From Leucoraja erinacea (Eukaryota): 64,000 bases of DNA. The stretch is from contig NW_026576777.1 in NCBI RefSeq assembly GCF_028641065.1, positions 1 through 64,000 on the forward strand. The letters are read 5' to 3'. Below, in pieces: positions 31,993-58,360 of this stretch; the first letter of the stretch is position 1; each line of letters begins with the position of its first letter. The translations under genes and the position numbers were made by a program. Below the pieces are notes generated by a model. The model did no database searches, had not been told where the DNA came from, and worked only from the letters and a program-made list of their open reading frames with translations.

Positions 31993-32041
31993 ATGTCATC
32001 GTTTACACAATTCATCTCCACACTCTGCCTCTTTCTCCCAG
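31993..32041 (+). CDS. Exon 1: leader/signal peptide MSSFTQFISTLCLFLP(G)
   Basis: ATG at 31993, hydrophobic stretch, strong donor CAG|GTAAGT at 32041/32042, 49 nt, phase 1, like Ig/TCR leader exons. Confidence 0.8.
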
Positions 32042-35000
32042 GTAAGTCATTCATGTTCACCCTTGCCAACCTGCTCACGTTGTCTTCCTATAACTTGTTT
32101 CTTTCTATGCCTTTTGCACTAAAGGTTGTTTTTTTGCCGTATTTTAGAAACTTCTTGTGTAATTTATGTTCAATTTGTTTTTTGAATATGTGTTTGTTTC
32201 AGTGTAAGTGCATGTGATGCTGTTGCAAGCAAGATTTTAATTTAGACACAAAAGCAGAAATTGGACATTTAGTTAAAATAAGAATAAAGGGGAGACCATT
32301 ACAGACTAAGGTGAGAAACAGCTTTTTCACCCAGAGAGTTGTGAATTTGTGGAATGGTTCCGAACCGAAACGTCACCCGTCATTTTTCACCAGAAATGCT
32401 GCCTGACCCGCTGAGTTACTCCTGTACCTTGTGCCTATCTTAAATATAAGCGACACAAGGAACTAACTGTAGATGCTGGAAATGCAGTTCTTGTAAGTTT
32501 ACATGAGGACATTAACGCAAATAAATGTAAGCGACACAAGGAAGTGCAGATGCTGGAATCTTGAACAAAACACAGTACTGGAGTAATTCAGCGGTTCAGG
32601 CAGCATCTCTGGAGAACATGGACAGATGATGTTTCGCGTCGCGACCTTTCTTCAGACATGTTCTCCAAAGATTCTGCCAGCGCCGCTGAGTTTCTCCAGC
32701 ACTTTGTGTCTGTCTTCGATATAGATCAACATCTGCAGTTCCTTCCTACACAAGTGGTTACAGGTGAGAGAGGGGGGGGGGGGGGGGGGTTAATTGGGCC
32801 TGGACCTCACTGTCCTTGTGCCCATGATAGTAAACTCGAGTTACTCGGAAGGCGTCGTTAACTATGTTCACTTTCCGTGCCAGGGTCCGCTGTCGGTGTG
32901 AGGGTGAACCAGTCTCCTGCTGCTCTGACACGTCTCCGAGGACAGACAGCTAAGTTCACCTGCTCCCTGCTACCTGGAGAGGGGGAGGTAGTTTCAATGA
33001 GGCAATACTGGTTTCGGACGAAAGACAACCCGGAGCTCTGGGACAACAAGACCGAGAGTTTTCTGAAGACAGGCGACCGACTGTTCGTGTCCGTGGGCTC
33101 GCTGGTCATTCGGGAGGTGACTGTGCACGATGCAGACACTTACCATTGTGTGGTACTGAATGAAGATATCTGGAAAAAGTTTACAGGAAACGGAACCACA
33201 TTACACATCCAAGGTAATTAATATAATAATAAACAGGAACAGGCCCTTCAGCCCACTATGTTCGTGCGGACCATGAGGCCAAGTTAAACAAATATGTGTC
33301 TATCCAAATGTCTCTTAAACTCTACGATCGTATCTGCCTCCACAGCCACCCCGACATCTGATGCGATGGAGTTGGTGAATCACACGAACCCCAAGTTCCC
33401 CACCCCGAAACGCCGCCTGTCCATTCTCTCCGCAGATGCGGCCTTAACCGCTGAGTTCCTCCAGCATTTTGTGTTTTGCTTAAGACTGCAGCGCCTGCAG
33501 TTCCATGTCTCTACTTCCATTTCATTCCTGCATTTCATCTCTCTCTATTAATGCTCATTTTCCGGCACAAACCATCCCAGTCTGACAAAAGGTCCCGAAC
33601 TTAAACGTCATATATCCATGATTTCCAGAGATGCTGCCTGACCCGCTGAGTTACTCCAGCGCTTTGAGTCTTTCTTTGGTAAAAATAAACCTCGCATCTA
33701 CAGTTCCTCCTGTCTCCCTAATGATACAAAATAGATAATGAAAACAACATCAACCTCGGTCGCAGTGTTTATATCCCCCAACAGTTCTAGTGTTGGCATT
33801 TAATTCTCCTGATTTCCTTACAAGGAGGGAGTGTGGAAACAAAAGCATCTTTGTTTCTCTCAGTTTTCTCTAGATTCCCTCTTGACCTGAATTCGTCAAG
33901 TTGGGAAAAGGGGAAGTACAACGTGATCTGGGGGGTCCTTGTACATCAGTCTATGAAAGTAAGCATGCGGGTACAGCAGGCAGTGAAGAAAGCGAATGGC
34001 ATGTTGGCCTTTATAACAAGAGGAATCGAATATAGGAGCAAAAGGGTATTTCTGCAGTTGTACAGAGCCCTACTGAGACCACATCTGGAGTATTGTATGC
34101 AGTTTTGGTCACCTAATTTGAGGAAGGATTGCTATTGAGGGAATGCAGCGTAGGTTTACAAGGTTAATTCCCGGGATGGCGGGACTGTCATATGCTGAGA
34201 GAATGGAGCAGCTGGGCTTGTACACTCTGGAATTTAGAAGAATGAGAGGGTATCTTATTGAAACATATAAGATTGTTAAGGGCTTGGACACGCTAAAGGC
34301 AGGAAACATGTTCCCGATGTTGGGGAGTCCAGAACCAGGGGCCACAGTGTAAGAATAAGGAGTAAGCCATTTAGAACGGAGACGCGGAAACACTTTTTTC
34401 TCACAGAGTGTGGTGAGTCTGTGGAATTCTCTGCCTCAGAGGGCTGTGGAGGCAGGTTCTCTGGAAGCTTTCAAGAGAGAGGTATGTAAAGCTCTTAAAA
34501 TTAACAGAGTCATGGGATATGGGGAGAAGGCAGGAACGGGGTACTGATTGGGGATGATCAGCCATGATCACATTGAATGGCAGTGCTGGCTCGAAGGGCC
34601 AAATGGCCTACTCCTGCACCTATTGTCTATTGTCTATTGATTCTTGTCTTTGTCAAGTTCGGTTTAATATTTGCTTCCGGGCTCCAGGGAAGTATAATAA
34701 TGCCCCTGAAATAATTCCCGGCTGCGATAACCAAATGTGCGGCAGATGCATCATGTATATGTGTGAAAATGAACACAACTAAATATAAGCGATAGAATCA
34801 AGGAGGGCAGCAGTGAGAGAGGGCAGACTCCAAGTGATGGAGTAACAGCGGGCCAGGCATCATCTCTGTATATCATGGATAGGTGACGTCTCAGTACGGG
34901 GCCCTACTACAAACTCCGAGAGAGGTTATTACAGAACTGCTGTCGGAGAGAAGAGGATAACTTCTTCAATGAACGCACACCTTGAGGAATTTCACAGTGG

Positions 35001-37740
35001 AGCAGTCAAATGTAGACACTGGTTTATACCACTCAACGGGTCAGGCAGCACCTCTGGAGATCACGGATAGGTGACGTTTAGGGTCAGGGCTCTTCGTCAG
35101 CCTGTGTTGGTTTGTGCCTCAACGTGCACATTAATAGAGAGAAATAAAATGCAGGAAGGGAAATAAATAGAAGTGGAGACGGGGAACTGCAGGCGCTGGA
35201 GTCTGAAGCAAAATACAAAGCAACGGGGAACTCGGCGGTTAAGGCAGCATTCGTGGAGGTTTGGTGTTGGGGAACTTGGGACGTGTGTGAGGTCCCCACC
35301 CCACCGTCTCAGCGGACAGTGGGGGTGTTCGCACACATCCCTAACGCTTCATTGAAGGGAGGCAGCTACAATGCAAACGTGCGGCCGCTCTCCCATCGCT
35401 CACGGGCTGGCGAGAGGGAGCCCGACCCGCTCAGACTCTGTTAAATAATTCTGGCAACGTGAATCCATCTTCTGACCAATCTGGGCCGGACAGTGCCAGA
35501 TGTAACACAAAATGCTGGAGCTACTCATCGGGTCGGTCCGTATCTGTGTGCGTGTGTGGGAGGAGGGGGGGGGGGGATAATTTACCGATTCACATTGAAG
35601 GCTTCCAGTCGAAACCCTGACCCTGAGACACAAGGAACTGGAGGGGTTGGTTAAAACAAAGACGCAAAGTGCTGGAGTAACTCATCGAGTCAGGCAGCAT
35701 CTCTGGAGAACATGGACCGTCATTCTCTTCCCACGAATCAGGCCTGTCCGGCTGAATATTTATATGTTCTGTTTTAGATGTCCATCATCGGCTTGGATTT
35801 AGTTTACCGTCTACATATTCAGTTCCATTTCATGCATTAAAACACACAAAGTGTTGGAGGAACTCGGCGGGTCCGGCAGCATCTGTGGAGGGAATGACAG
35901 GCGGCGATTCAGACCGAAGAATGGTCCCGACCCGAAACACCGCCTGTCCATTCCCCCCGCAGATTCACTGTGATCATGGCTGAGCATCCACAGTCAGTAT
36001 CCCGTTCCTACCTTCTCCCCATATCCATGGACTCCGCTATCTTTAAGAGCTCTATAACTCTCTCTTAAAAGCATCCAGATAATTGGCCTCCACCGCCTTC
36101 TGAGGCAGAGAATTCCACAGATTCACAACTCTCCGGATGAAAAGTTTTTCCTCATCTCCATTCTAAATGACCTACCTTAAAAATTCCAGCATCTCCAATT
36201 CCTTGTGTCTCCAATTGCATTTCATTCGCTTCCTGTATTTTTCTCTCTTATTGTGCATTTTGAGACACAGACTGAAGAGATGTAGTCTGTAGATGTAACC
36301 CGACCCGAAACATCACATATCATCCATGAAGAGTTACTCCAGCACTTTGTGTCTCGTCAGCTATCCATGTTCTCCACAGATGCCGCCTGACCCTCTGAGT
36401 TACTCCAGTACTTGTGCCTTTCTTTGGTATAAACCAGCGTTTGCAGCTCCTCTTATTCCGCTAATAATCCATTGAATAACTTGGTTGCTCCTTAAGCAGG
36501 TGCACGGCGTGCCGTGTCATCATAGTTGTTCCATGCATGACTGAGAGCGACAGGAAGATTCACAGCGTGTTATTTTCCTACTTTACGCAGCGAAGCCTGA
36601 CATCTCCCTGACCCTGGATCCCGGGGTAAAAGGCGCAAAGACGCGGAGCCTGACTTGTGTGGCCGCCGGATTCTTCCCGAGGGAGCTGAACATGTCCTGG
36701 GCTGTCGTGGGCCAGTTGTCCTATGAAACAGAAGCGGGGCCGCTGAGGGAGAATGAGGATGGAAGCTTCAACGTGAGCTCCCGGCTGCGGCTCACCTGCC
36801 CTCGGCTAGAGGCGGGCATGGTCGTCACCTGCCTGGTTCAGCACCTCACGGGGACGGGCTCGGTGAGCGAACATTTCCCTCCCATCCCAAGTAAGTGGCT
36901 TGAATGAACGTGGCAGCCAGCGTCCTCCAATTACTGAAGATACACAGAGTGCTGGAGTAACTCAGCGGCTCAGTTACTGCCGAGTTACTCCAACATGTTG
37001 TGTCTATCTGCGCTGTAAACTAGCATCTGCAGGTCCTTCCTACACATGTCCAAGGTTGCAAGGTTTAATAGTACATGTGTACACATTTGTTAAACGTAGC
37101 CACAATGAACTGCAGATTCTAGATTACAAAAAAGACACAAAGTGTTGAAGTAACTCAGTAGCGTCTAGTAGCATCTCTGGAGAACGTTGAACGCAATTCA
37201 TAAACCTGATCAAAAGTGTATAAGATCACTCAATGTGTACAATATCTATTGCAAATATGTATTTAGACTTTCAGACTTTAGAGATACGCGGAAAAAGGCA
37301 TTTCGGCCGATCAGCGATCACCTCATACCGCTAGACAAACACACGCTGGAGGAACTCAGCGGGTGAGGCAGCATCTATGTAGAGAAGGATATGCGACGTT
37401 TCGGGTCGAGACCTTTCTTCTTAAACACATCATACACTAACACTATCCTGCACATTGGGGACAATTTACAATTTTACCGAAGCCAATTAACCTACAAACT
37501 CGTACGTCTTTGGAGTGTGGGAGGAAACCGGAGCACCCGGAAAAAAACCCACGCACGTCACGGGAAGAACGTACAGACTCCGCACATCCAACACCCGGAG
37601 TCAGGATTGAACCCGCGTCTACTGCGCTGTAACAGCAACTCAAGTACAGTTCATCCGTGCATCGATATATATATATACATATTTGAGTTCCTGCCATATA
37701 TATTATATATATGTATGTTTATGCATCGATGATATCAGCT

Positions 37741-40700: not shown

Positions 40701-43700
40701 TATAAATCTCCCAAAATATTTATTTTAAAAAGTTGACTCTATAGTGCCAAGTTTTATTTGGAATTATAAGAACGATTGAATAAGCAAAAAACACTTATGC
40801 AAATCCAAGACCAAAGGAGGATTGGTTTTACCAATTTTTTAATTTTACTTTTGGGCAGTCAATGTCAAAAATATGAATTTTTGGTTGGAAGATATGGATC
40901 AACAACCAGACTGGTTAAAGATGGAAAAGGAAGACTGTTTGCCTTTTGAAATTGGTCCGATTCTGTTAGCTCCCACAAAATTGAATTAAAAAATCTATAG
41001 TGAAAACCCTATAATATATAGTGGTATTCGACTTTGGAAACAACCAAAAAAGGCATTAAAATTGGATAATTTATCATTTTCTCTCCCCATTGCAAATAAC
41101 TCTTCATTTAAACCCTCAGTGTTGGATAAAGGTTTTGTACAATGGAAAAATCATGGAATTAAAAAATGGGACATCTTTATAGAAATTGTATTTTTCTCTC
41201 GTTTGAGGAGTTACAACAGAATTACGGATTACATTCAAATAATTTTTTTAGATATTTACAACTTAAGATTATGTTAAATCACATACACGAGAATACAGAA
41301 CCAGAGAACCAGAGATTCTAGATGAATGTTTGAATAAACACCCTAACACAGTCAAATTAATATCTCACATTTATAATACTTTTATAGACAGTGAGAATCC
41401 GTCCACGGAATTATACAGAGCAGCATGGGAAAAGGAATTAGCTCAACCTATAACGAAATATATTTGGGACGAAAGCCTACAACATATACACCAATGTTCG
41501 TTAAAAACCAGACATTCTTTAATACAATTTAAAGTACTAAATAGACTGCATTATTCTAAGACAAAATTAAATAGAATGTTTCCTAATATCTCTCCTATCT
41601 GTGATAAATGTCAATCACACATGGCTAATTCAACCCATACTTTTGTAAACTGTAGTAAAATTAAAAATTACTGGATGGATATTTTCAAAATAATCTCTGT
41701 AGTCGTCAATATCTAAATGGATCCCAATCCTAAATTAATAATATTGGGCATATCAGAACAATACCTAAAACTCACAATAAACCAAATAAATTTCCTTGAT
41801 TACAGTATAATAATTGGGAAAAAATTGATATTAAAATTTTGGAAAACCCAACAACCCCCACAATCAAGATGTGGATTATGGAGATGTCGGAGACCTTACA
41901 TTTGGAAACAATTAGATTTCTTAATTGACAAACCAGAATTATTTACTAGAATATAGTCTCCATTTATAGATTTATGAAGGGGTAGATCGGACTAGTGTGA
42001 AGGCTGGACTGAAGCCTGAACCCAGGACTAGATGAATAGTTATGTTCTCTGGCCCCAAGTTGTATTATTGACAGTTTATCCTATTTTTCTAATTTCCTTC
42101 TTTCTTTCTTTCTTTTTCCTATCTATAAATATAAATAAATAATTAGGGGCAATGTTAACATGTAAACGATAAAGGAGGATCCCAGCTACATTGGTAACTG
42201 GCTCCCTGGAAACCTGGATAGTTAATATGTAACCGTTAAACAAAGTCTGTACTGGTTTGGATTATGATATGCAGATGCCTCTAATAAAAATCTATTAAAA
42301 AAAAAAGGAAATTGGAGGAACAACATCTCATATTTCGCTTGGGTAGTTTACAACCCAGGGGTATGAATATTGATTTGTCTAACTTCAAGTAACCCTTGAA
42401 TTCCCTCTCTCTCTCCATCCCTCCCCATCCAAGTCACAAGTTTTTTGTTCTCACCTAGCTACAGCTAACAATGACCTGTTTCCTTTATCATCAATACTTT
42501 TTTGCATATCTTTCATTTAGTTGTTCTATATCTCTCGACATCATTGTCGATATCTCTTGTTTCCCTTCCCCTTGACTTTCAGTCTGCAGAAGTCTTGACT
42601 CAAAACGTCACCCATTCCTTCTCTCCAGAGATGCTGCCTGTCCCACTGAGTTACTTCAGCATTTTGTGTCTATCTTCGATTTAAACCAGCATCTGTCGTT
42701 CCTTCCAATGAAATTCTGCTCCTCTGTCATCTAATTTGCTCCCTGTTCTCACGATCGGTCCTTGACCTGTTTCTTTAACTTTGTTTCTCTTTACACATTT
42801 TTAGATTAGATTAGATTAGGTCCTTTATTTGTCATTCAGACCTTTCGGTCTGAACGAAATGTCGTTGCCTGCAGCCATACATGTAATAATAAACAACAAA
42901 ACACCGGGCGATGGTAGTCAGTCCCGCGGCTCACCGAGCTCCGTCAACGGGACGGTTCACGCTTCGCGGCCCGGGGTGGTCGAAGCTGCCACACTCCAGT
43001 CCAGCGGACGCAGCTGTTGCCGCGGGAGCTCCGGAAAACAGGCACCAGCCTGTGACCTGCGAGCTCCCGACGATGTCGTCCACTGGCCCGCGGCCGAGCC
43101 CCCGGATTCAGGTCGCCGCCGCCAGAACGCCGCCTCAGCTACTGGAGCACCGTCCCAGCCCCAAGCCGCGCCGCCCCCACGGGAGCGCCGTCCCAGCCTC
43201 GAGTCGTGCCGCTGCCACTGCGCCGGGCTGCCTCAGCCCCGTGCCGGGCCGCCTCAGCCACCGGATAGCCTTCCTGGCCCTGAGCCGGGCCACCCTCACG
43301 GGAGTGCCGTCCCACCGGAACATCGAGTCGTGCCGCTGCCACCGGAGCATCTCAGCCCCGCGCCGGGCCGCCCTCACGGGAGCGTCGAGTCACTGGAGCG
43401 CCCTAACGCCGCCACAGCTTGAAGACGGCCAGCCTAGTGTTGGTGAGTCCTGGCTGGCTCTACCTCCGGAGCCTCGAGGTCGGTCGCAGGTTGGAGGCCG
43501 CCAGCTCCGCCATTAGGCCTCAGCGCAGATGGAGGCAGAGGAGGGGGATATGACAAGAAAAAGTCGCATTCCCTGAAGGGAGAGACAGAAAGCCCTGTTT
43601 CAGCCGCCCTCCCCCACACACATAACACAACCTAATAAATTTAACCAAACAAGACAAAAAAACCAACACAAAAAAGTATAAACAGACGGACTGCAGGAGA

Positions 43701-46700
43701 GCCGTTCAACAGCGCCGCCACTTCCGGAGCCTGACCTGCTGCATATTTACAGCATTTTCTTTCTTTTCTTTAATTAAAAAAAAACTTCTTGTTGTAGATT
43801 GGTTACTTTACTTACTAACCAATGTAGTGCTTTATTATTATATGGCAGGAGACAGCGTTTATCCTCTGTGACCTGGGAGATCTTGGTTTCATAGTAAATG
43901 ATTTACCGAAGCCAGTAAGCAGATATAGCAAATCAACGTGAAAGCTGTATAGTGGAAATGTCAAGGACTAGAGGACATAGCTTCAAGGTGAGAGAAGCAA
44001 AGTTTAAAGGAGATGTACGGGACAAGCTGTTTTAAGCAGAGGGTGGTGAGTGCCTGGAACATGCTGCCAGTAGTGGTGGTGGAGGCTGATATGGTAGTGG
44101 CATTTAAGAGGTGTTTAGATAGGCATATGGATGTGCAGGGAATGGAGGGATATGATTCACGTGCAGGCAGAGAAGATTGGTTTAACTTGGCTCCATGTTT
44201 GTCACAGACATTGCAAACTGAAGGGCCTGTACTATGTTCTAAACTCTATGAGGTTGGCAGATTCTGTACACAACACATTCCAAGACAGACCATTACATAA
44301 AGGATTCACTGTTGATTTTGCATAATGATTTTTCCTTATTCTTTGGTTTATAAGGGGCAAAGTTTAACAAAGATGTGCAGGGTGAGTTCTTATACACAGG
44401 GTGGTGGGTTCCTGGAACACGCTGCCAGGGGTGGTAGTGGAGGAAGATATGATAGTGGTGTTTAAGAGGCTTTTAGGAAGCAGTTACGCAGCTGATTTTC
44501 CAATAAACCTGGGATGTCCTGGGATGTCAGGACTTTCATATGAAGAAAGACTGGATAGACTCGGCTTGTACTCGCTAGAATTTAGGAGATTGAGGGGGAA
44601 TCTTATAGAAACTTACAAAATTCTTAAGGGATTGGACAGGCTAGATGCAGGAAGATTGTTCCCGATATTGGGGAAGTCCAGGACAATGGGTCACAGCTTA
44701 AGGATAAGGGGAACACCTTTAGGACCGAGATGACAAAAACATTTTTCACGCAGAGTGGTGAATCTCTGAAACTCTCTGCCACAGAAGGTAGTTGAGGCCA
44801 GTTCATTTGCTATATTTAAGAGAGAGTTAGATGTGGCCCTTGTGGCTAAAGGGATCAGGGGATATGGAGAGAAGGCAGGTACAGGATACTGAGTTGGATG
44901 ATCAGCCATGATCATATTGAATGGCGGTGCAGGCTCGAAGGGCCAAATGACCTACTCCTGCACCTATTTTCTACGTTTCTATGTTTCTATGTAAACCCTA
45001 GTGGTTTGTGAAATGTTTCACTTCTCACTAAACAGCTCGGTAATTTACAACACCTATTGAGTCCACACCCAAGATTAGAAGTTGTTCAGCCACAGCCATA
45101 CAATGATGTCTGTCTTGCGCTTGTTGTGCTTCTTGTGCGTGATGGTGGGAGATTGGTGGAAACAGGGCCGCGACGTGAACGCTCTTTCCTTGACCCCATT
45201 TACAACACGTTATATTGCGGTCATTTACAACACAAGGATCCAATCTTTACCCCAGTAACAGTAAACTTAGTGAATAGTAAGAATGTTAATCTATGAATAG
45301 AATAATGTTGGTTTTCTCCTCTGAAAGGCCTGGCTCATTTCTTTAAGTATAGATATTTGTAGAAATAGAATATTAAGTGATAATCAAGGAGTATCTATAG
45401 TAACATTGACTTCTCTAACTTCAAGTAGCCCTTGCTTTCCCTCTCTCTCCATCTCCTCCCTCTTCCCAGTTCTCCTACCAGTCTTACTGTCTCTGACTAC
45501 ATTTTATCTCTGTACTGCCCACTTCCCTGACATCAGTCTGAAGAAGAGTCCCAACCAGAAAAGTCACCCATTCCTTCTCTCTAGAGATGCTGTCTGTTCC
45601 GCTGAGTTACTCCAGCAGTTTGTGTTTGCCTTCGATTTAAACCAACATCTGCAGTTCTTTCCTACACATATCTATATTAACAGACATATTGGTAATATTT
45701 ACCATGGAATTCCTGCAGAAAAAAATCCCATTGACATATTTCACAAGAGCAATATATCGGAAATATTAGATTTTAATATATTTCTGTTTCAATTGTCTGT
45801 GCGGAGATTGCATGTTTTAGCTGTGACCGCGTGGGTTTCCTCCGGGTGCTCTGGTTTTCTCGCATGTCCAAAAGACATAAAGGTTTGTAGTTCAATTGGT
45901 CCCTGCACATTGCCTCTAGTGAGTAGAGAGTGGATGTGAAAGGGTGATAACATACAACTGGTGTAAACGGATGATCGATAGTCAGCGTGGACTCTGCGGG
46001 TTGAAGCACCAGGTTCTATCTGTGTTTCTAAACAAAATTAAACTAAACGACATACATGATTAATGTTTCATGTAACAGTGCATTTAAATTATTTAATGTA
46101 ATGTAACATGCAATAGTCATGATTATATTTGCTATTCATTGTAGCATTATTTTGATTCATATTTCAATTGTGATTTTCAAGGATCCTCCAAGTATTATTT
46201 CATTCGACTGAGTCTGATCCTAATAGTACCAATATGGGTCTGGTTTGTGTATCATTATCACAGTAAATTGAAGAAAGGAAAAGGTAATGTATATATTGTA
46301 CATTTTATTTTGTAATTTAACTAAAAACTGAGTATATAAAAGTGAATATTGTCTTTAGTTCCCAGAGAGATTAAAATAATTTAAACAAAATGAGGGTGAC
46401 AGCTTGTAGAGCTGCTGCCTCACAGCGCTAGAGATCCAGGTTAGAAACATAGAAACATAGACAATAGGTGCAGGAGTGGGTCATTCAGCCCTTCGAGCCT
46501 GCACCGCCATTCAATATGATCATGGCTGATCATCCAACTCAGTATCCCGTACCTGCCCTCTCTCCATACCCCCTAATCCCCCCAGCCACAAGGGCCACAT
46601 CTAACTCCCTCTTAAATATAGCCAATGAACTGGCCTCAACTACCCTCTGTGGCAGAGAGTTCCAGAGATTCACCACTCTCTGTGTGAAAACAGCTTCGAA

Positions 46701-47150
46701 CCAGCACCACCATTCAATGTGATCATCTAAAATCAGTACACCGTTCTTGCTTTTTCACCATATCCCTTGATTCCTTTAGCCCTAAGAAATAAATCTAACT
46801 CTCTCTTGAATCCTGACTACGGGTGCTGACTTTGTGTAGAGTTTGCATGTTCTCCCTGTGACCACTTGGATTTCCTCAGAGTGCTTTGTTTTTCTCCCAC
46901 ATCCCAAAGATGTGTGGGTTTGTAGGTTAATTGACCCTGTGTAAATTGCCCCTAGTGCGCAGGGAGTGGATGTGAAAATGGGATAATGTAGAACTAGTCC
47001 GAACAGGTGATCGATGGTCGGCGTAGACGCGGTGGGCTGAATGGCCTGTTTCTGTCCTGTATTTCTGAAATACACTAAATATTCATGATATTTTTTATAG
47101 AATCATCTCTCCATGACACAACTGTTGATATTCAAAGCATGAGAAACTGA
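31993..47150 (+). CDS. Non-rearranging VJ-C1 Ig-superfamily type I membrane receptor (NKp30/SIRP/antigen-receptor-like), predicted join 31993-32041, 32884-33213, 36591-36890, 46182-46283, 47101-47150; 276 aa
   Basis: All five exons have GT/AG sites and phase-1 junctions typical of IgSF genes. Lengths 49+330+300+102+50=831 nt keep one frame. Domain order is signal peptide, V(J), C1, TM, short tail. Confidence 0.8.
32884..33213 (+). CDS. Exon 2: V-set Ig domain with built-in J-like G strand
   Basis: Acceptor ctttccgtgccAG, donor CAAG|GTAATT. Protein VNQSP..RGQTAKFTC..QYWFR..SLVIREVTVHDADTYHC..FTGNGTTLHIQ has the B-strand Cys, C-strand Trp, D-x-x-x-Y-x-C and G-x-G-T-x-L motifs. Confidence 0.93.
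33898..34640 (+). mobile_element. CR1 3' fragment in the V-C1 intron
   Basis: KKANGMLAFI, RPHLEYC, QRRFTRLIPG; tail tattgtc repeats. Confidence 0.9.
36591..36890 (+). CDS. Exon 3: C1-set Ig constant domain
   Basis: Acceptor ttttcctactttacgcAG, donor A|GTAAGT, 300 nt. AKPDISL..SLTCVAAGFFPRELNMSW..ENEDGSFNVSSRL..VTCLVQH matches the C1 signatures C-x-A-x-G-F-x-P, W, N-x-D-G-S-F and C-x-V-x-H. Confidence 0.92.
37744..37796. repeat. (AT)n microsatellite
   Basis: Direct reading. Confidence 0.95.
37863..38226 (-). mobile_element. CR1 family A 3' fragment
   Basis: Reverse complement of the family A 3' end with an (aaccatat)n tail. Confidence 0.9.
39726..42710 (+). mobile_element. Penelope-like element (GIY-YIG region and pLTR) split by an L1 insertion
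   Basis: An alternative frame reads CNHKRCNTC..FQVRQRFTCISSNLTYCIRCSICGLLYIGKT..RLG; resumes at 42321 with QHLIFRLGSLQPRGMNID. Confidence 0.8.
40073..42306 (+). mobile_element. 5'-truncated L1-clade LINE
   Basis: GFRQGCPLSPLLF, SLYADD, SGYRINWNKS, C-terminal CDKC..HTFVNC; AATAAA and A-tail; 14-bp TSD ggaaattggaggaa at 40059-40072 and 42307-42320. Confidence 0.92.
42800..43730 (-). mobile_element. GC-rich non-autonomous LINE-derived element with a (ctaat)n tail
   Basis: (ttaga)n end; 3' hairpin related to the 20140-20200 family; internal tandem GC-rich units. Confidence 0.55.
44515..44992 (+). mobile_element. CR1 family B 3' fragment (older CR1-like tails at ~43950-44480)
   Basis: PGMSGLSYEERL..; (tttctatg)n tail. 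Confidence 0.9.
46182..46283 (+). CDS. Exon 4: transmembrane exon RSSKYYFIRLSLILIVPIWVWFVYHYHSKLKKGK
   Basis: Acceptor tgattttcaAG, donor AAG|GTAATG, 102 nt, phase 1/1. About 19 hydrophobic residues containing one Arg, followed by the basic stop-transfer KLKKGK. Lies in non-repetitive AT-rich DNA. Confidence 0.75.
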
Positions 47151-47168
47151 AATACCTCAGTAAATGAG
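47101..47168 (+). CDS. Exon 5: cytoplasmic exon ESSLHDTTVDIQSMRN-stop (TGA 47148-47150), followed by 18 untranslated nt
   Basis: Acceptor attttttatAG at 47099-47100, consensus donor GAG|GTGAGT at 47168/47169. Confidence 0.65.
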
Positions 47169-47289
47169 GTGAGTAATTTAGTTTGATATTTACCCTTATG
47201 TTGCATGCACGATGTTCTAATGTACACTGCGGTATTGTCAGCTTATATGAACAAATTCGTCAGCACTATTGGATGTAATGGACTTTGTG

Positions 47290-48160
47290 GTTTTGCAGAT
47301 AGTGAAGATGATTGTGAAATATTGTAGCAGGATTGGCCAGGTGGGCAGAGGAATGGTTGATGGAATTTAATACAGAGATGTGTGAGATGTTGTATTTTGG
47401 GACATTGAACAAAGGCCTACACAGTAAATGGTAGGCCTCTGGGTAATATTGTAGAGTAGAGGCATCTACCTGGGACTCAACCATGGTTCGTTGAAGGTCT
47501 AGTCGCAGGTAAATAAGGTGGTCGAAAAGGCTTTTGGCACTTTGGCCTTCATCAGTCAAAGTATTGAGTATCAAAGCTAAGAGGTCATGTTGTAGTTGTA
47601 TAAGACGTTGGTGAGACGGCATTTAGAATATTGTGTTCAGTTTTGGGCACTATGTTAGAGGAAAGATATTGTCAAGCTTGAAAGGTTTCAGAAAATATTT
47701 ACGAGGATGTTGTCAGGACTAGAGGGTGTGAGCTATAGGTAGAGATTGAGTAGGCTGGGTCCCTATTCCATGGAGCACAGGAGGATGATGGGAGATCTTA
47801 TAGAGGTATACATAATCATGAGAGGAATAGATCGGGCAGATGCACAGAGGCTCTTGCCCAAAGTAGGGGAAGCGAGGACCAGAGGACATAGGTTCAAGGT
47901 GAAGGGGAAAAGATTTAATAGGAATCCGAGGGGTATCTTTTACACACAAAGGATGGTGGATGTATGGAACAAGCTGCCAGGTTAGGTAGTTGATTCTATC
48001 CCATCCTTTAAGAAACAGTTTGACAGGTAAATGGATAGGGCGGGTTTGGAGGGTTATGGACCAAGCGCAGGCAAGTGGGACTAGTGCAGCTGGGACATTG
48101 TTGGCCGGTGTGGGCGAGTTGGGCCAAAGGGCCTGTTTCCACACTGTATCTCTCTCTATG
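47290..48160 (+). mobile_element. Old, decayed CR1 3' region
   Basis: GDLIEVY.IMRGIDR, RTRGHRFKVKG, FYTQRMVDVWN. Confidence 0.8.
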
Positions 48161-50929
48161 TCTCTATAACACAAAACATTCTGCGGCACGGTGGCGCAGT
48201 GGGAGTGTTGCTGCCTCATAGCTGAGTCGCACGTTACGAGTTAACACAAGAGTCAAGAGTCAAGAGTCAAGAGTCAATTTAATTGTCATTTGGACCCCTG
48301 GGGGTCCAAACGAAATGCCAATGCCAAACTGAAGGGAGCGACTGCCCCGGGGCGACTGGCACTCACCTGCTGGCATCGCCGACGTGAAGACAGTTCAAAG
48401 CCCCCGCGCCAGTGCAATGGGCGGGGAGCTGGAGAGAGGAGGTAAAGGGTCACACACATGGCCGGGAAGCAGAGGGGTGTAGGTGGGGGTGGTGACAGAT
48501 AGGGCCAACAATGAGTGGAGAAAGACAGAAACACCGACGTGCAAAGAAGACCTACAACAAACAGTGCATGATCTCTCTTGCGTTATGGCAGCTGTTCCTG
48601 AAGCTAAAGCCTTGGGATCGTTGCCCTTCGTGTTGGTTTGGAGGGGGAGAGGGGGTATTGTGCTGTTTGATCGCCCCCTGCTATCCCAGGGACAATGAGA
48701 CACAGCGGCTTTTGAGACTGGTGGGCAATCACGTCTAAAGTGTCTGCCCACACAGTCAGTACACCTCTCCTACACTTGTCTCCACCTCTCCTACACCTGC
48801 CTCCACCACTTCCACTGAAGCTCATTCCACACCGCTACCACTCTCTGAGTAAAGAAGTTCCCCCTCATGTTACCCCTAAACCTCTGTCCCTTAATTCGTG
48901 GGTTTTCTCCGGGTGCTCCCGTTTCCTCTCATTCTTCAAATTGGATTCTGTAAAAACTATCACTAGTGTGTAGGATAGTGCTAGTGCAGGGGTTAATCGC
49001 TGTTCGGCACGGACTCGGTGGGCCGAAGGGCCTGTTTCCGCACTGTTTCTCTAAAGTCTACTGCATCTGCAGTTCCTTGTGTCAGCAAACCCGAATTGTC
49101 GCTGTCCTTTTTCAATCGAGAGAATTTTTCAATGTATTTAACTTGTTTGCCGTTTGCTTCCATCAGCTGGAATTATACTGCCAACAAAGTGAGATCCATA
49201 TTCCAAAACACACTCCCTCTTCAAGGAGGCCTTGTGATCAATTGCATACCAGTCATTGGGCATTGCTGTGTAATGAGTTTCATTGTTGAAGAAGTGATGT
49301 TGCTACTAATATGCGTTGGATTCCATTCTCTTCAACTAAATCTACTATGCGTAAAATGACCTCAAGTGCCTGGTTTACTCATTATTGTGAATGCAGGGTA
49401 TTTTACCCAGGATAGGAAAATCTGGCTGCGTTATTCAAGCACTTTGGGGCTTTTTCCAAGCCACCATCTGCAGTTCCTTGCGTATTTATTAAAGAAGTTC
49501 GGTTCTGTTACTTTTTAGCGTAAGAAAGAACTTCAGATGCTGGTAAAAATCAAAGGTTTTGATCAGTCTGAAGAAGGATCTCGACCCCAAAACGTCGCCC
49601 ATTCCTTCTCTCTAGAGATGCTGCCTCACCGGCTGAGTTACTCCTGCATTCTGTGTCTATCTTCTGTTACTTTTTTATTCTTCTACTCTGTGAAGACTTT
49701 AAGCTTGGAGTATAATTCCAGGGTCTCATTGTCCTCAATGTTATTTCTCACTTCTTCAAGTGTATATCCTAGCGTTGATGAAATGACATATCTTGACCAA
49801 GTCTGATTAGACTTTAGAGATACAGCGTGGAAACAGGACATTTGGCCCACCGATTCCGCACCGACCAACAATCACCTCTTACACTAGCGCGATCCTACTC
49901 ACTGGAGACATTTTACACATTTACTAAAGCCAATTAACCTACAAACCTGTATGTATTTGGAGTGTGGGAGGAAACTGGAGCATCTGGAGGTCCCACGCGA
50001 TCAAGGGGAGAACACATAAACTTTGTACAGACAGCACGTGTAGTCAGTCGGGATTAAAACCAGGTCTCTGCCGCTGTGAGGCAGCTACTCTACCGCTGCG
50101 CCAATGTGCCCCCTAATCATGCACCTTTTTGCACATAACATTAGTTGCACTCCTCAGACTGACTTTCACCTCCGTATCATTTTACACACACAAAACCTGA
50201 TAGCGACAAACAAAACAGCTGTTAATCTTGTCCTTTTAGAGATGGTCAGATACAGGTCACAATGGCAGATTATAGCAGGCACAGATATTCCCTACACACT
50301 GGGGGCAATTTACATAAGACCACAAACCCGCACTTCTTTGTGACATGGGGGGAAATTAGAGCATGGATGAATTAATTAACTCTGCCCGATATCTTTCCCT
50401 GGATGTGCAGCAGCTGAAAGTGATGGGGGTGGGTTTTCTCCTTAAACAGCTCAGTGAGTGGTCGGATGAATTTTTGCAGTTGGAGGTCACTTCAGTAAAA
50501 TATGAAGTGCCAGCGCAAAGTTCTCTGATTCTAGCAATATTCCACCGTCATATCACACTGTCCCCTACCAACAACAATCCCATCAATACCTCCCTGCCTG
50601 AGATCATTTGTTGCCGGCCCTGATTTGTCCCAGTCTTTGCTTACTTTCAGTCCCCCCCCCCCCAGTCTGAAGAAGAGTCCCAATCTGAAACGTCACCTGT
50701 CCACCACATAGACGTTGTCTGTCTCGTTGAGTTTGTGTCTATCTGATTCTAGCAAGCTTTGTTGTTGGGAAAACTGAATACAATGGACTGGCCATTGTTA
50801 AGATCAGAAAATGACCCAAAGACTCAACTGCCAGGCAGTATCTCTGCTGAATATGGATAGATATGTTTCCTCGACGGTGAAACTGATGAGAAGGTTGGTT
50901 GACCCTGTTAAGGGACAAGAGTGTTGTCA

Positions 50930-51365
50930 TTTGTTGTCATATACACTGACAACAGAACAATAACATTCTTATTTGCAGCAGCAAGCCTGTAAACACAAGG
51001 CATACAAAGAATATATAGCAAACAAAAATGCAATCCATTAATAACTCCAATACCATTGCAAAAACCCACAAAGTGTGTAGTGCAACTAAAGACAGTTTAG
51101 TTGATGTTGTGCAAGTGTTGAAGACCCTGATGGTTGGTGGAAAGAAGCTGTTCCTGAACCTGGACATTGCTGTGCACACATTCCTGTACCTTCTTCCTGA
51201 TAGCAGGAATGAAATGAAAGCGTGGCCAGAGTGCTGTGGGTCATTGATGTTATTGGTTGACTTTTAGAGGCAGCGCCTCCTGCAGATCCCTTCGATGTTG
51301 TGGTGGTCTGTTCCTGTGATGGACTAGGCAGTGCCCACCACTCTTTGTAATCTGCTTCATTCCTG
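50930..51365 (-). mobile_element. Rex1/Babar-like LINE 3' fragment; a second copy lies at ~53340-53670(-)
   Basis: C-terminal motif RFRNSFFP / SGRRYRSLKVRTNRFSNSFFPSVIRL. Confidence 0.6.
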
Positions 51366-52471
51366 GGTGATGTTGATAATGATATCAGTGAAACAGATAT
51401 TGCCCACATATGCCCATCGATCACTGACTAGTCCATGGACACACACACACCCACACTTTAGCTTTTGCCCATTTGGTGTTTACTAATCAAATTCGTTACT
51501 GATTTCACATGACTTTTCAATATAAATCAGGAACAGAGCCTCATTATAATTTATAAATTATAAATTATAAATCAGGAACAGAATACCTCATTAGATTCAG
51601 CTAAAAATAAAATGACCATAAGATCATCAGATATAGTAGCAGAATTAGGTCATTCAGCCCATCGAGTCTGCTCCGACATTCACTCATGGCTGATCTAATT
51701 TTCCCTCTCAACCAATACTCCTGCCTTCTCCCCGTAATCTTTGACATCCGTACTAATCAAGAATCTATCATTCTCCGCTTTAAAATTATCCAATGTCTTG
51801 GCCTCTACCACTGACTGCGCTAATGAATTCCACAGATTCACCACCATCTGGCTAAATAAATCCTCTCATCTCCGTTCTATTGTTATCCAAAATGTTCTAA
51901 AGTTCTAAAATTCCTCCGCACCTCCAATTCTAAAATGAAGTAAATATCTTTCTAACAATAAGTTGGAATGTATACAGAGACGATTTACGATGATGTTGAC
52001 AGGACTTGATGGAGAGGTTGAGCAGGCTTGGACTCACTGGAGCACAGGAGGATAATGGGCGATGTTATAGAGGTGTATAAAATCAGAATGGGAATATGTG
52101 GGTGAATGCACTGAGCTTTTATAGCCAAAGGGAATTGAGAAATAGCAGGCAAATGTTTAATGTGAGAGGGAAAAACCTGAGGGGCAACTTTATCATTCAG
52201 GGTATATGTGGGTATATGGAACTAGCCGCCGGAGGACGTAGTTGGGGCAGGGACTACAACACCATTTAAAAGATATTTGGACAGGTACATGGACACAAGG
52301 TTTAGAGGGACTAGTGCCAACCGCGGGCAAATGGGAACATCTTAGATGGGGCATCTTGGTCAGCGTAGACGAGTTGGGCCGATGGGTCTGTTTCCGTGCT
52401 CTATAACTATGATATCAACTCTATAACACTAATATTTGCAAGTGGTTCTTATTGTTATTTTTGTGTTGCAG

Positions 52472-52590
52472 GATAATGTTTCAATAAACTATGAAAATCT
52501 GCATTAGGCGCCTGTTTATTGCAAGGACAGGAATTGAGATGGACCGAGCAATCCCAAGAAACAGAATATGCCGTCTTAAAGGTCAAAGAT
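52472..52590 (+). pseudogene. Exon 6: now untranslated, decayed ITIM/ITSM-like cytoplasmic tail (DNVSINYENL..ETEYAVLKVKD)
   Basis: Acceptor tttttgtgttgcAG at 52470-52471. The phase-0 frame gives INYENL, and a second frame gives TEYAVL. Adding one T at 52504-52505 joins the two frames. Confidence 0.65.
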
Positions 52591-53900
52591 AACAATTCTC
52601 TCTTTTTTGCATCTTTCTTCTTTTTCTTCATTCTTTTCGTTTTTTTCTTTTCCTCGATTTATGTATCAATTTATTCTTTTCGATTTATGTATCAATTTAT
52701 AAGATGTTAAAAATGAAGCTGTACGGAAATTGTATAACTCTCATGCTGATTGCTTTATTCTTGTACAATAGCTCCTAATAAAATAAACATATTAAAAAAA
52801 AGATTAAAATAATTTATGAAGAACCGGTAACTTACTCCACAGTAATACATTGTCCCTCTTCAACATAACCGCAAACTGATACTTATCATACAACCACACA
52901 CTCATCTCTCAAACAACATATGCAGAATATAAAAAAAACAGAATCTAGCGGATGTGGCATGGCTGTCGAAACTTACTTCTCTATTCAATTACTTTCCTTG
53001 AGCTCAAAACCAATTGATCTTTGTGACTCGCCATAAATCGCCTTCTGAGAGTTCCAAATGTACTTAGAATAAAGGGGAGGCATTTAGATTGAGGTGAGAA
53101 AAAACGTTTTCACCCAGAGAGTTGTGAATTTGTGGAATTCCCTGCCACAGAGGGCAGTGGAGGCCAAGTCACTGGATGGATTTAAGAGAGAGTTAGATAG
53201 AGCTCTAGGGGCTAGTGGAATCAAGGGATATGGGGAGAAGGCAGGCACGGGTTATTGATTGAGGATGATCAGCCATGATCACAATAGTTGGCGGTGCTGG
53301 CTCGAAGGGCCGAATGGCCTCCTCCTGCACCTATTTTGAAAAGCTTTGTTTTGCATGCTATCCAATCAAATCAGATACTACTATACATAAATACAATTAA
53401 CCCAAACTCAAGTACAATAGGTGGAGCAAAGTAGAAGATACAAAGTGCAGAATTTAATTCTCAGCACTGTAGCACACCGGTTCCACAGACAAAGTCCAAT
53501 GTCCACAATGGGGTAGAGGTGAATCGGAAGCCTGATAACAGAGGGGAAGAAGCTGTTGCTGAATCTGTTTGTGCGCACTTTCAAGCTTCTGTACCTTCTG
53601 CCTGATGAGAGCAGGGAGAAAAATGAATGATCAGGTTGGGACAAGTCTTTGATTATGTTGGCTGCCAATCCGATGAGCCCCACACCTCTACTTTCAGAAG
53701 GTTCCGACCCAAAACGTCACCTATTTTTTCTCTAGAGATGCTGCCTGACCCGTTGAGCACTTTGTCTCTATCTAGAGCTGGGTTACACTGAAGATCATCA
53801 GTGCCCTAAAACATGACCCGTCCATGTCCTCCAGAGATGCCACTTGACTCTTCCTCAGTCTGAATGGGTCTTCTGTCCTGGCAGATGTTTTCACGAGGTT

Positions 53901-54572
53901 TAACCATATAACCATATAACCATATAACAATTACAGCACGGAAACAGGCCATCTCGACCCTTCTAGTCCGTGCCGAACACATAATCTCCCCTAGTCCCAT
54001 ATACCTGCGCTCAGACCATAACCCTCCATTCCCTTCCCATCCATATAACTATCCAATTTATTTTTAAATGATAAAAAACGAACCTGCCTCCACCACCTTC
54101 ACTGGAAGCTCATTCCACACAGCTACCACTCTCTGAGTAAAGAAGTTCCCCCTCATGTTACCCCTAAACTTCAGTCCCTTAATTCTCATGTCATGTCCCC
54201 TTGTTTGAATCTTCCCTACTCTCAGTGGGAAAAGCTTTTCCACATCAACTCTGTCTATCCCTCTCATCATTTTAAAAACCTCTATCAAGTCCCCCCTTAA
54301 CCTTCTGCGCTCCAAAGAATAAAGCCCTAACTTGTTCAACCTTTCTCTGTAACTTAGTTGCTGAAACCCAGGCAACATTCTAGTAAATCTCCTCTGTACC
54401 CTCTCTATTTTGTTGACATCCTTCCTATAATTAGGCGACCAAAATTGTACACCATACTCCAGAATTGGCCTCACCAATGCCTTGTTCAATTTTAACATTA
54501 CATCCCAACTTCTATACTCAATGCTCTGATTTATAAAGGCCAGCACACCAAAAGCTTTCTTTACCACCCTAT
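53901..54572 (-). mobile_element. CR1 family A 3' fragment; adjacent CR1 pieces at 53065-53337(+) and 54943-55270(-)
   Basis: DRVVKKAFG..RPILEYGVQFW..; (aaccatat)n tail. Confidence 0.9.
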
Positions 54573-56411
54573 CGCGTTCCTGTTTAGATTTAGCTCCAAG
54601 GGCTAACGGAATCAAAGGATATTGATAGAGAGCAGGAACGCGGTACTGATTTTGGACGATCAGCCATGATAATATTGGATGGCGCTGCTGACTCGAAGGA
54701 CCAAATGACCTATTCCTGCACCTATTTTCCATGTCTCTATGACCTGAAACATTGCCTGTCCTCATACTCCAGAGACGCTGACTGACTTGCTGAGTTACTC
54801 CAAGTTGATTAGTCCGACTGATTTTGGTAAGTCTGAATAAGGGTCTCGATCCGTTATCTAATCTGAAGAAGGGTCTCGATCCGTACGGTGCCTGTCCAGC
54901 TGAGTTCCTCCAGCACATTGTGTTGTGTTCCAGGTTCAATCATAGAAACATAGAAACATAGAAAATAGGTGCAGGAGTAGGCCATTCGGCCCTTCGAGCC
55001 TGCACCGCCATTCAATATGATCATGGCTGATCATAGAAACATAGAAACATAGAAATTAGGTGCAGGAGTAGGCCTTTCGGCCCTTCGAGCCTGCACCGCC
55101 ATTCAATATGATCATGGCTGATCATCCAGCTCAGTATCCTGTACCTGCCTTCTCTCCATACCCCCTGATCCCTTTAGCTACAAGGGTCACATCTAACCCT
55201 CTTAAATATAGCCAATGAAATGGCCTCAACTACCTTCTGTGGCAGAGAATTCCAGAGATTCACCACTCTTACCACCACAAGGGCCATTGTCTTGCAGAGC
55301 ACAGTTGCTTGTGTCATCCAAATTAACATCCATCTTTCTTGTTTTAATGGAGTTTTCCTGTCAGAGTGGTTGATGCAGGGAATTAGATTGTGGGGATAAT
55401 TTTCGCTTTTACCTGACTCCGGAGAAAACTGGAGCAATAGATCGTGGAATCTCACACGGCAATACTTTGTTCTGTTTACCACTGTATCTCTAGTTGGTCA
55501 CATCTGAGGTCAGATCAATTCCAGACCACTGCTTCAAAACATGCGCAAGCCATTACAATAAATTACGCAGAAGCAAACATGGTGATATTTACTCATATTT
55601 TGCAATCACTCTCTGCTCCCACCACATCCTGCCCATGAACATCTCCACCCAGTTTAGTTCACTTTAGTTTAGATTATTGTCCCGTGTACCGAGGTACAGT
55701 TAAAAGCATTTGTTGTTGTGTGCTAACCAGTCAGTGGAATGACAATACATGATTCCAATCAAGCCTCCACAGGGTAAAGGGAATAATGTTTAGTGCAAGA
55801 TTTGGGTGGCACGGTGGCACAGCTGGAGAGTTGCTGCCGTGCCAGAGACATGGATTTGATCCTGACTATGGGTGCTGTCTGTTTCCCGAAGGGCCTGTTT
55901 CCACGGTGTATCTCCAAACTAAACTAAATTAAAGTCCAGTAAAGTCTGACGGTGTGCAATGAGGTAGATCAGGACTGCTCCCTAGTTGGTGATAGGATGG
56001 TTCAGTTGCCTGATAACAGCTGCGAAGAAAGTGTCACTGAATCTGGAGGCTTGCGTTTACAAGCTGCTGTACCTCTTGCCTGACGGAGGAGGGTTGAATC
56101 CACTTTAAATGCAATTTTCATGGATCCTTACCTGATGTCAAGCAATCTTGTTGTGTATTTGGAGTATTGTTTTGTTTAAAGAGTAAGTCATAAAATGCTT
56201 GAGTAACAGCGGGTCAGGAAGCGACTGTAGAAGGAACGGACATGTGATGTTTCGGGTCGGGACCCTTCTTCAGACTGATTGTTGTAGGAGTGGGGGAGGA
56301 AACTAGAAAAGAGAGGTGGTAGTAGGACAAAGTGATAGGTGGATACAGGGGATGGGGGGGATTGATCAGCAGATTGGTTGAATAAAAGACCGATAAAGAA
56401 TAAAAGGCTGA

Positions 56412-57015
56412 ATAACCATATAACAATTACAGCACGGAAACAGGCCATCTCGACCCTTCTAGTCCATGCTGAACACGTATTCTCCCCTAGTCCCATACAC
56501 CTGCATTCAGACCATAACCCTCCATACCTTTCCCGTCCATATAACTATCCAATTTATTTTTAAATGATAAAAATGAACCTGCCTCCACCACCTTCACTGG
56601 AAGCTCATTCCACACAGCCACCACTCTCTGAGTAAAGAAGTTCCCCCTCATGTTACCCCTAAACTTCTGTCCCTTAATTCTCAAGTCATGTCCCCTTGTT
56701 TGAATCTTCCCTACTCTCAGTGGGAAAAGCTTATCCATGTCAACTCTGTCTATCCCTCTCATCATTTTAAAGACCTCTATCAAGTCCCCCCTTAACCTTC
56801 TGCGCTCCAAAGAATAAAGCCCTAACTTGTTCAACCTTTCTCTGTAACTTAGTTGCTGATACCCAGGTAACATTCTAGTAAATCTCCTCTGTACCCTCTC
56901 TATTTTGTTGACATTCTTCCTATAACTCAGCGACCAAAATTGTACACCATACTCCAAAATTGGCGTCACCAATGCCTTGTACAATTTTAACATTACATCC
57001 CAACTTCTATACTCA
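56412..57015 (-). mobile_element. CR1 family A 3' fragment
   Basis: ORF 56487-56993. Confidence 0.9.
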
Positions 57016-58360
57016 GAAAGTTATGGGCTTTTGACTGTCCACGATCACAGCTTTTTTGTTATGTCCATAGAAAATCAATAGGGAACAAGATGCTAATTTC
57101 CGAGTATGAAAATGGCCATAACCTTTTAAATACTTGAGATATGAAAGTGAATTAGGTGTCAAATTAAACTTCTTTTTATGCTTTATCTGATGGGATAAAT
57201 TACAGACTTGATTTTTTAAATCTCAAAATTTTGTAACATTCCTAGTCAGTGCACAAGAGTCGCCATGTTTCCGGCGCCATTTTGTGTCCTTGAGGGACGC
57301 CGCACAATGGCTGCCTCACCAACGGTCTGTCTTTGTCTTTTTCATTCTTTGTGTTTTTAGTTTGTTGTAAAATGTATGTTTTAGTTTATCTTTACTTTTG
57401 TATTTGTGGGGAGTGAAACTTTTCTTGCCTCTTTCCTCGACGGAGATATGACTTTTTCTATATCGTATCTCCATCGACACTGCGGTCTAACATTGTGGAG
57501 TTAGCTGCCTCTTGTTTGGGACTTCTAGGGCTCCAAAACAGTGGAGCTTGCGGGCTTTAACATCTCAGAGCGGTCGGGGTCGGCCTTTGGTGCTCAAATC
57601 TGCGGCTGCTGTGGATGTTAACATTGTGAAGCTCGTGGTCCCCGGTTAGCGATCAACTCCAAGCCACAGGAGTTTTGACCGCCCTGGTGTGGGAGCTTAG
57701 ACCGCCAGGACATGGGAGTTCGATCGCCGGCTGCAGATGGTTCGACTGCTTCAACTTCAGGAAGAAAGGTGGAAAGAAGATAAAACTTTATTGCCTTCCA
57801 TCCATATGTGGAGGAGCCGCTGTGGTGGACGTTTATGTTACATTTTTATGTAGTGTGCTAGTTGCTTTTTTCTTTTGACAGTTTGGCAAACCAAATTCCT
57901 TGTATGTTGCAAAACATACTTGGCTAATAGATCATGATTATGATCAGTATTTAGTCGTTAATTATTGTCACACGTACACATACAGTAAAAAGCTTTCCTT
58001 GCATGCTAACCAGTCAGCGGAAAAACTATGCATGATTATAGCTGTGAAAAGCTATATCAAGCCATCCACAGTCCACAGATACAGGATAAAGGCTATAATG
58101 TTTAGTGCAAGATAAAGTCCAGTAAAGTCAGTTTAAAGATGGTCCAAGGGTCTCCAATGAGGTTGATGGTACCACAGGACCACTCTCTAGTTAGTGCGAG
58201 GACGGTTCAGTCACCTGATAACAGCTGGGATGAAACAGAAACTGTGAATTGTTAAAAATGTTAGTGCCTTAACTTGGCCATAAAAGCCTGTTGTCATTTA
58301 TCCCTCTCACATTAAAGCTCTAGCCTTTCTAGTCTTTTATATTTCTATGAGGGAGATTCT

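Follow-up and report, generated by a model that had tools for sequence, protein, structure and literature searches.

How does an inhibitory immune receptor lose its inhibitory tail, and how much of that tail stays legible once it is no longer translated? The question is raised by a stretch of 64,000 nucleotides from the skate Leucoraja erinacea (NCBI RefSeq assembly GCF_028641065.1, contig NW_026576777.1, positions 1 to 64,000 of the forward strand; hereafter the window, meaning the whole of this stretch). It holds an unannotated six-exon gene on the + strand, spanning 31993 to about 52800, in which a stop codon in exon 5 precedes a sixth exon with remnants of tyrosine motifs. An earlier reading made from the letters of the window (hereafter the sequence-only reading) had proposed descent from an inhibitory receptor, and this is borne out by homologues that carry a tail with several tyrosine motifs. 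Here, we argue that the gene very probably encodes a short-tailed V-C1 receptor derived from a four-motif inhibitory ancestor, with a dead tail that is still recognisable and an arginine gained in the transmembrane (TM) helix. The outcome would be the conversion of an inhibitory receptor into a probably activating one with a short tail.

The gene and its family

HMMER and Pfam searches were made with the exons queried singly, tblastn with family proteins against the window, and all positions given below are those of the 64-kb window on the + strand. The gene was assembled from the following parts:

31993..32041, +, exon 1: ATG and signal peptide/leader, ending in phase 1 (direct reading)
32884..33213, +, exon 2: V-set (VJ-type) domain (Pfam V-set, E 2.4e-8)
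36591..36890, +, exon 3: single C1-set domain (Pfam C1-set, E 4.8e-13)
46182..46283, +, exon 4: transmembrane, ending in phase 1 (direct reading; tblastn E 2e-6 to P0004)
47101..47168, +, exon 5: membrane-proximal tail (aligns with family DSSIHDKNVD..SVNE)
52472 onward, +, exon 6: acceptor at 52471/52472 with a good pyrimidine tract

Exons 1-4 were open, and all splice sites were canonical with compatible phases. The immunoglobulin (Ig) hallmarks were retained, namely the Cys, the Trp, DxxxYxC, a J-like GNGT motif and the C1 Cys pair. A V-set domain followed by a C1-set domain, in one phase-1 exon apiece, is the architecture of a receptor family found in elasmobranchs, and the V, C1 and TM exons all matched that family in tblastn. 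Exon 2 was 66% identical to Pristis P0001 (tblastn E 7e-40) and exon 3 was 62.5% identical to the same protein (tblastn E 3e-34 for C1), while the exon 1 leader resembled ray leaders (..LWLFLPG..) and had a weak tblastn match to P0004. A HMMER scan with the V exon returned one close protein, P0001 (67% identity, phmmer E 4.8e-35), plus three more above E 1e-16 (P0001-P0004 in all), and a follow-up search brought the family to 16 members from sharks and rays. These are named by NCBI 'signal-regulatory protein beta-1-like' or 'tyrosine-protein phosphatase non-receptor type substrate 1-like', or are mislabelled as Ig or T-cell receptor (TCR) chains. Judged by these similarities, the gene is a member of the elasmobranch V-set/C1-set membrane receptor family that NCBI predicts under the names 'SIRP-alpha-like' or 'SIRP-beta-1-like'.

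It does not belong to the mammalian SIRP family proper, which is V-C1-C1. The skate gene has a single C1 exon, and among solved structures in the PDB this exon ranked UrIg2 first (9dmx_A, E 3.5e-19), followed by IgG/IgA heavy-chain constant domains and then by the C1 domains of SIRP-alpha (6e-14) and SIRP-gamma (5e-13). The window gave no separate tblastn match to a further C1 exon or to another gene of the family, and these were rejected; both C1 copies of P0002 and of P0054 matched the same exon. Neither was an inhibitory partner with a similar ectodomain found in the window by tblastn.

The limits of exon 4 and of the exon 5|6 junction are supported by predicted isoforms of the family. P0061 (Heptranchias) and P0058 (Heterodontus) lack the TM exon, omitting exactly the exon 4 block with the tail still in frame. 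In Pristis X2 (P0001), whose tail is short, the sequence departs to an alternative end beyond ..SVNK, and this switch point is the position of the 47168|52472 junction of the window. The exon 5|6 junction proposed by the sequence-only reading thus coincides with an exon boundary of the family. Splicing in the SIRP-like family may also yield short or soluble forms.

The exon 5 stop codon

Together with its carried phase-1 base, exon 5 reads ESSLHDTTVDIQSMRN, then the stop TGA at 47148-47150, and then NTSVNE. It closes at a consensus phase-0 donor, GAG|GTGAGT, which is compatible with the acceptor at 52472. Direct reading therefore agrees with the sequence-only reading on the in-frame TGA and on the read-through that leads to exon 6. 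The protein as assembled ends ..SMRN and has a tail of 25 residues. Skipping of exon 5 was considered as a rescue and rejected, since it gives GGA TAA, an immediate stop.

The TGA lies 18 nt before the exon 5|6 junction, the same count as obtained earlier. Under the 50-55 nt rule, an mRNA whose stop is nearer than this to the last junction should escape nonsense-mediated decay. Given its distance of 18 nt, the predicted mRNA of this gene should do so.

A family tail in relic form

The intact tail of the family is about 110 residues long and carries four tyrosine motifs, LHYAxV, TEYAVL, VxYSxV and TxYASL, the homologues reading ..LHYAxV..TEYAVLKVKDKNN..VxYSxV..TxYASL. It was present in Scyliorhinus, Heptranchias, Heterodontus, Stegostoma, Hemiscyllium and Mobula birostris, and in Narcine in part only. 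Because these motifs are of the type of the immunoreceptor tyrosine-based inhibitory motif (ITIM) or switch motif (ITSM), the long-tailed members are presumed to be phosphatase-recruiting inhibitory receptors.

Fragment alignment placed four collinear relic pieces of this tail between 47103 and 52916 of the window, in the order of the family tail. The first lies in exon 5 and the other three behind the exon 6 acceptor:

52472..52519, +, exon 6 piece a, frame 0: DNVSINYENLH-stop-APVY (tblastn and alignment)
52522..52596, +, tail relic piece b, frame +2: QGQELRWTEQSQETEYAVLKVKDNN, in which TEYAVL (52561-52578) is the second motif (tblastn, five homologues; alignment)
52809..52916, +, tail relic piece c, frame +1: IIYEEPVTYSTV..SSLKQ, with the third motif VTYSTV at 52827-52844 (tblastn E 5e-6 to P0054 and 8e-6 to P0057)

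The tblastn matches covered 47100-47168 (weak alone), 52472-52519, 52522-52608 (E 2.5e-6 to 4e-5) and 52791-52916 (E 5e-6 to 1e-4). The best single match scored 40.8 bits, where 200 shuffles of 52472-52920 gave at most 20.0 (0/200 reached it), and the sum of three matches was 101.7 against a shuffle maximum of 50.1 (0/200). A chance origin of the tail motifs was rejected on this test. In protein searches, the exon 6 open reading frame (ORF) as a query found no homologue, and a shark tail as a query found sharks only and no skate protein.

The frame from 52507 contains ..QELRWTEQSQETEYAVLKVKD.., as had been read earlier, and the out-of-frame TEYAVLKVKD within it, which aligns with homologues and is matched by tblastn, proves to be a true relic of an inhibitory tail. 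Relatives with an intact tail, which the sequence-only reading had proposed to look for, do exist among sharks and rays, although their first motif is LHYAxV and not INYENL. The distal half of the tail (52809-52916) and the retro-insert described below were absent from that earlier account. In the skate the four-motif tail survives as an out-of-frame, interrupted relic, and no [SIVL]xYxx[IVL] motif is translated in the tail as assembled; with Arg at 47148 only INYENL would be. On the alignment with its homologues, we take it as shown that the gene descends from a receptor of the four-motif inhibitory type and has since lost the tail.

Lesions of the tail exon

The first lesion of exon 6 falls on the first ITIM. 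The TAG at 52505-52507 aligns with the tyrosine of this motif, the family reading ..(E/S)(T/S)LHYA(P/S/F)V and the window ..ENLH-stop-APV. Five residues upstream of the old ITIM tyrosine, at INYENL (52484-52501), the homologues have L/A-S-N/S/D-E-T/S-L, with no tyrosine. A single substitution (N/S/D to Tyr) in a conserved L/I..L frame is enough to give INYENL, which on this comparison is a lineage-specific rather than an ancestral ITIM-like motif. In relatives with Arg at 47148, INYENL would be the C-terminal motif of the protein.

Two further lesions follow:

52517..52521, +, frameshift site: eight family codons absent, a deficit of about 22 nt (alignment and frame reading)
52597..52798, +, retro-insert: about 200 nt, T-rich, splitting the tail exon after ..KVKDNN (direct reading and word depth)

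Past APVY the family has eight codons before QKQEL..., where the window has 2 nt (52519 to 52522). The insert contains AATAAA twice (52777-82, 52782-87) and has an A-run at its end (52794-52801); an imperfect direct repeat borders it on both sides (52585-52596, 52799-52813). Its word depth in DNA runs was about 30-250x that of single-copy pieces. We read it as a retroposed repeat. Behind it, piece c has an in-frame TAA at 52866-68, and the tyrosine of the fourth motif has become His (CAC, 52899-52901).

The lesions in DNA of relatives

Four sets of DNA contigs covering 47000-52850 were compared with the window: X1 and X3 from organism A, X4 from organism B and X5 from organism C. In unique intron pieces the divergence from the window was about 1.7% for A, 0.6% for B and 4% for C. 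Position 47148 is C in all contigs of X1, X3 and X4, giving the Arg codon CGA, and A in X5, giving the Arg codon AGA; T was seen in 0/4 runs. Because the relatives read CGA or AGA, the ancestral codon was Arg, in keeping with the earlier suggestion that the TGA arose from CGA. The T of the window is either a CpG transition, private to the lineage or the individual, or an error. Within a span of 200 nt, the window also departs from every one of the four runs at 47109 and 47259, which argues for real divergence rather than random error at 47148. Three exon 5 positions differ from the related runs (47109, 47148 and 47155), and all three differences change the amino acid (L/V, stop/R, T/N). The rate of difference is about 4% of the 68 nt of exon 5, compared to 0.6-2% in neighbouring intron pieces.

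The order of the lesions is indicated by X1. Its contig at 52381-52625 has zero substitutions relative to the window, and so a genome that keeps CGA has the TAG as well, together with the beginning of the insert. The TAG is therefore older than the TGA, and since the tail was already dead through this older TAG, it was not the TGA that silenced it. This does not support the suggestion of the sequence-only reading that the TGA turned the signalling exon into an untranslated region (UTR). From these comparisons the TGA would be the youngest lesion, or private, or an error.

The exon 6 contigs of the relatives also differ from the window in length. Those of X3 and X4 cease to match exactly at 52596, immediately before the insert, and then continue for about 185 letters, while the X1 contig enters the insert. 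X3 and X4 probably come from a copy or an allele that lacks the insert; the insert itself may be polymorphic, or a paralogous copy may be without it. Relative to the window, the exon 6 contigs carry extra letters somewhere in 52363-52596, 13 in X1 and X4 and 20 in X3. Thirteen is the right number modulo three, and if placed at 52517-52521 these letters may return TEYAVL to the frame of exon 6.

The transmembrane arginine and a model of the conversion

The helix of exon 4 (..YYFIRLSLILIVP..) contains an Arg codon, CGA at 46205-46207, at about residue five of the hydrophobic span. These columns read FALLSLI or FSLLSLI in the family and FIRLSLI in the window. Because the family motif has Leu at this column, the Arg is derived. 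The gene thus combines a basic residue in the TM helix with a 25-residue tail that carries no inhibitory motif, and with the fossil of an inhibitory tail behind it, as expected of an activating receptor of inhibitory ancestry. As a general rule of assembly, a basic TM residue docks onto the two paired acidic residues of a signalling dimer (PMC1440944). By analogy, the receptor would pair through its TM Arg with an adaptor bearing an immunoreceptor tyrosine-based activation motif (ITAM), of the DAP12, FcR-gamma or CD3-zeta type, and be activating.

Two ray proteins, P0060 (Mobula hypostoma) and P0062 (Hemitrygon akajei), share the V-C1 ectodomain and have a different Arg-bearing TM (..LIPFILRAVIITVG..) and a short tail. 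By their sequences they look like an independent partner of the activating type, drawing on a different TM exon. This ray-type exon (LIPFILRAV.. of P0060 and P0062) was considered for the window and rejected, as it gave no tblastn match there.

Taken together, we propose the following course of events. The TAG took the place of the tyrosine in the membrane-proximal ITIM, with a loss of about 22 nt just behind it, and a retro-element of about 200 nt split the tail exon, whose distal part acquired the TAA and the Tyr-to-His change. The most recent of these steps would be the change of the exon 5 Arg codon to TGA by a CpG transition. The TM helix acquired an arginine foreign to the family, and the short-tailed product would signal activation via an ITAM adaptor with acidic residues. 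Exon 6 would now serve as 3' UTR, with its poly(A) signal supplied by the retro-insert.

Alternative explanations

Several points weigh against this course of events. A search for RNA runs that contain the stretch found none, which leaves transcription, the splicing of 47168 to 52472 and the poly(A) site as predictions. None of the four runs supports the T at 47148, and none was shown to be the reference individual; the T could be an assembly error or a private allele. The contigs could in principle derive from a very close paralogue; X1 and X3 having one contig each at 47148 counts against that source. The ectodomain counts as intact by its open frames only, and the coupling to an adaptor is proposed by analogy only.

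The alternative that survives best, possible but doubtful, is that the TGA does not represent the species but reflects a rare allele or an error of assembly or consensus. The normal product would then end at the TAG at 52505, as ..NTSVNEDNVSINYENLH, and would be a TM-Arg receptor with one new C-terminal ITIM-like motif, dual-signalling or still weakly inhibitory rather than purely short-tailed. In its favour are the absence of T at 47148 from every contig and the fit of INYENL to [SIVL]xYxx[IVL] at the cost of one change in a conserved frame. However, the accompanying differences at 47109 and 47259 make the T look like lineage divergence, CpG to TpG is the commonest substitution, and no run was shown to be of the same species. 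In addition, only one residue would follow the +3 Leu of the motif, which is unusual for a working ITIM.

It is unlikely, in our view, that the whole gene is a dying pseudogene in which the tail lesions are the first visible decay and the short tail and TM Arg have no function. The last 450 nt of former coding sequence do contain at least six disabling or altering lesions, the gene is missing among the protein matches of annotated genomes, and the absence of a matching RNA run and the amino-acid-changing character of the three exon 5 differences point the same way. A selected switch is nevertheless favoured over plain decay, because exons 1-4 are open with canonical, phase-correct splice sites and the Ig hallmarks, and because the lesions are confined to the first ITIM and what follows it, as expected of a functional switch. 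The TM Arg, moreover, is precisely the change that a switch of this kind requires (PMC2213150).

We would give similarly little weight to a stepwise inhibitory-to-activating switch still in progress. Here, the relatives would combine the TM Arg with INYENL as a new C-terminal ITIM beside the one destroyed by the TAG, giving a dual signal of the KIR2DL4 type, and the TGA of the window would be a segregating or species-specific allele that removes it. The 13 extra letters of the relatives may, on this account, keep TEYAVL in frame.

Very improbable, finally, is the exact model of the sequence-only reading, in which INYENL is the ancestral ITIM, one T was lost at 52504/5 and an ITSM follows 26 residues downstream: one added base does join both frames, but no homologue has a tyrosine aligned with INYENL, the TAG holds the position of the ITIM tyrosine, and the deficit behind APVY is eight codons (about 22 nt), so that repair by one T is refuted by the family alignment.

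Our preferred reading remains that of a short-tailed receptor that arose from an inhibitory one by a selected switch.

Other contents of the window

On both strands of 1-31000 and 53000-64000, the window is dense in ORF fragments of reverse transcriptase and endonuclease of the long interspersed nuclear element (LINE) type, several of them near-identical copies (for example 5677-7344 +, 9481-10491 + and 58678-59508 +). An assembly gap of 151 N lies at 21669-21819. Long GC-rich open frames, rich in Pro, Ala and Arg, were seen on the + strand at 42820-43513 (intron 3) and 19486-20223 (upstream of the gene); they had no family matches and are probably low-complexity or repeat sequence.

Comparison with known systems

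The closest comparison is with the elasmobranch SIRP-like members themselves. Those of Pristis pectinata (P0001), Scyliorhinus canicula (P0003), Heptranchias perlo (P0055) and Mobula birostris (P0054) share with the window the leader, the V-set domain (47-66% identity), the C1-set domain (48-62%), the TM exon, exon 5, the phases and a collinear tail. Unlike them, the window has a tail with two or three stops, a frameshift and a retro-insert, and Arg in the TM helix where they have Leu. Its ectodomain has one C1 domain, whereas Hypanus and Mobula birostris have two. A literature search on SIRP or signal-regulatory protein ITIM tails in elasmobranchs or cartilaginous fish found no paper.

Human SIRP-alpha has four tyrosine motifs, including one of the TEYA type. 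The mammalian SIRP-alpha/SIRP-beta pair resembles the skate gene in its combination of an IgV tip with C1-set domains, the C1 domains of SIRP-alpha and SIRP-gamma being among the best solved matches, and the activating SIRP member resembles it in its short tail and basic TM residue. Mammalian SIRPs, however, have two C1 domains, and the one C1 of the window scores better to UrIg2 and Ig heavy chains. The likeness is therefore noted without a claim of orthology.

UrIg2, a shark non-rearranging gene that resembles antigen receptors (PDB 9dmx, PMC12227049), has in common with the skate gene a V exon of VJ type, a split leader and C1-set domains. In UrIg2 the VJ domain is followed by many C1-type domains, nine in nurse shark and 11 in epaulette shark (PMC12227049), compared to one C domain and a SIRP-like tail in the skate gene. 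A text search of the UrIg2 paper (PMC12227049) found no mention of ITIM.

Conversion of inhibitory into activating receptors is textbook knowledge for KIR, Ly49, SIRP and similar pairs. The mechanism is thus known, and what is new here is the TGA of exon 5 where relatives have Arg, along with the order in which the lesions followed one another and the way INYENL came about. The ordered lesions (a shared TAG, the retro-insert and a TGA unseen in relatives) form a datable natural series. In practical terms the gain is modest, consisting of a correct annotation of an unannotated skate gene and of its 3' end.

Activating KIR of hominoids arose from long-tailed inhibitory KIR through a basic TM residue and a stop inside the membrane-proximal ITIM, and the former tail was left non-coding (Abi-Rached and Parham, 2005; PMC2213150). 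The same two changes are found in the skate gene. KIR differ in belonging to an unrelated Ig family with C2/I-type domains, in using Lys instead of Arg and in the experimental demonstration of DAP12 coupling, where the skate adaptor is proposed by analogy; the skate gene adds the retro-insert and the TGA. The route of the ape activating KIR, a basic TM residue and a stop on the first ITIM tyrosine, would thus have been taken independently in cartilaginous fish by a family related to antigen-receptor-like V-C1 genes, which supports the recurrence of inhibitory-to-activating conversion across the immune receptors of jawed vertebrates.

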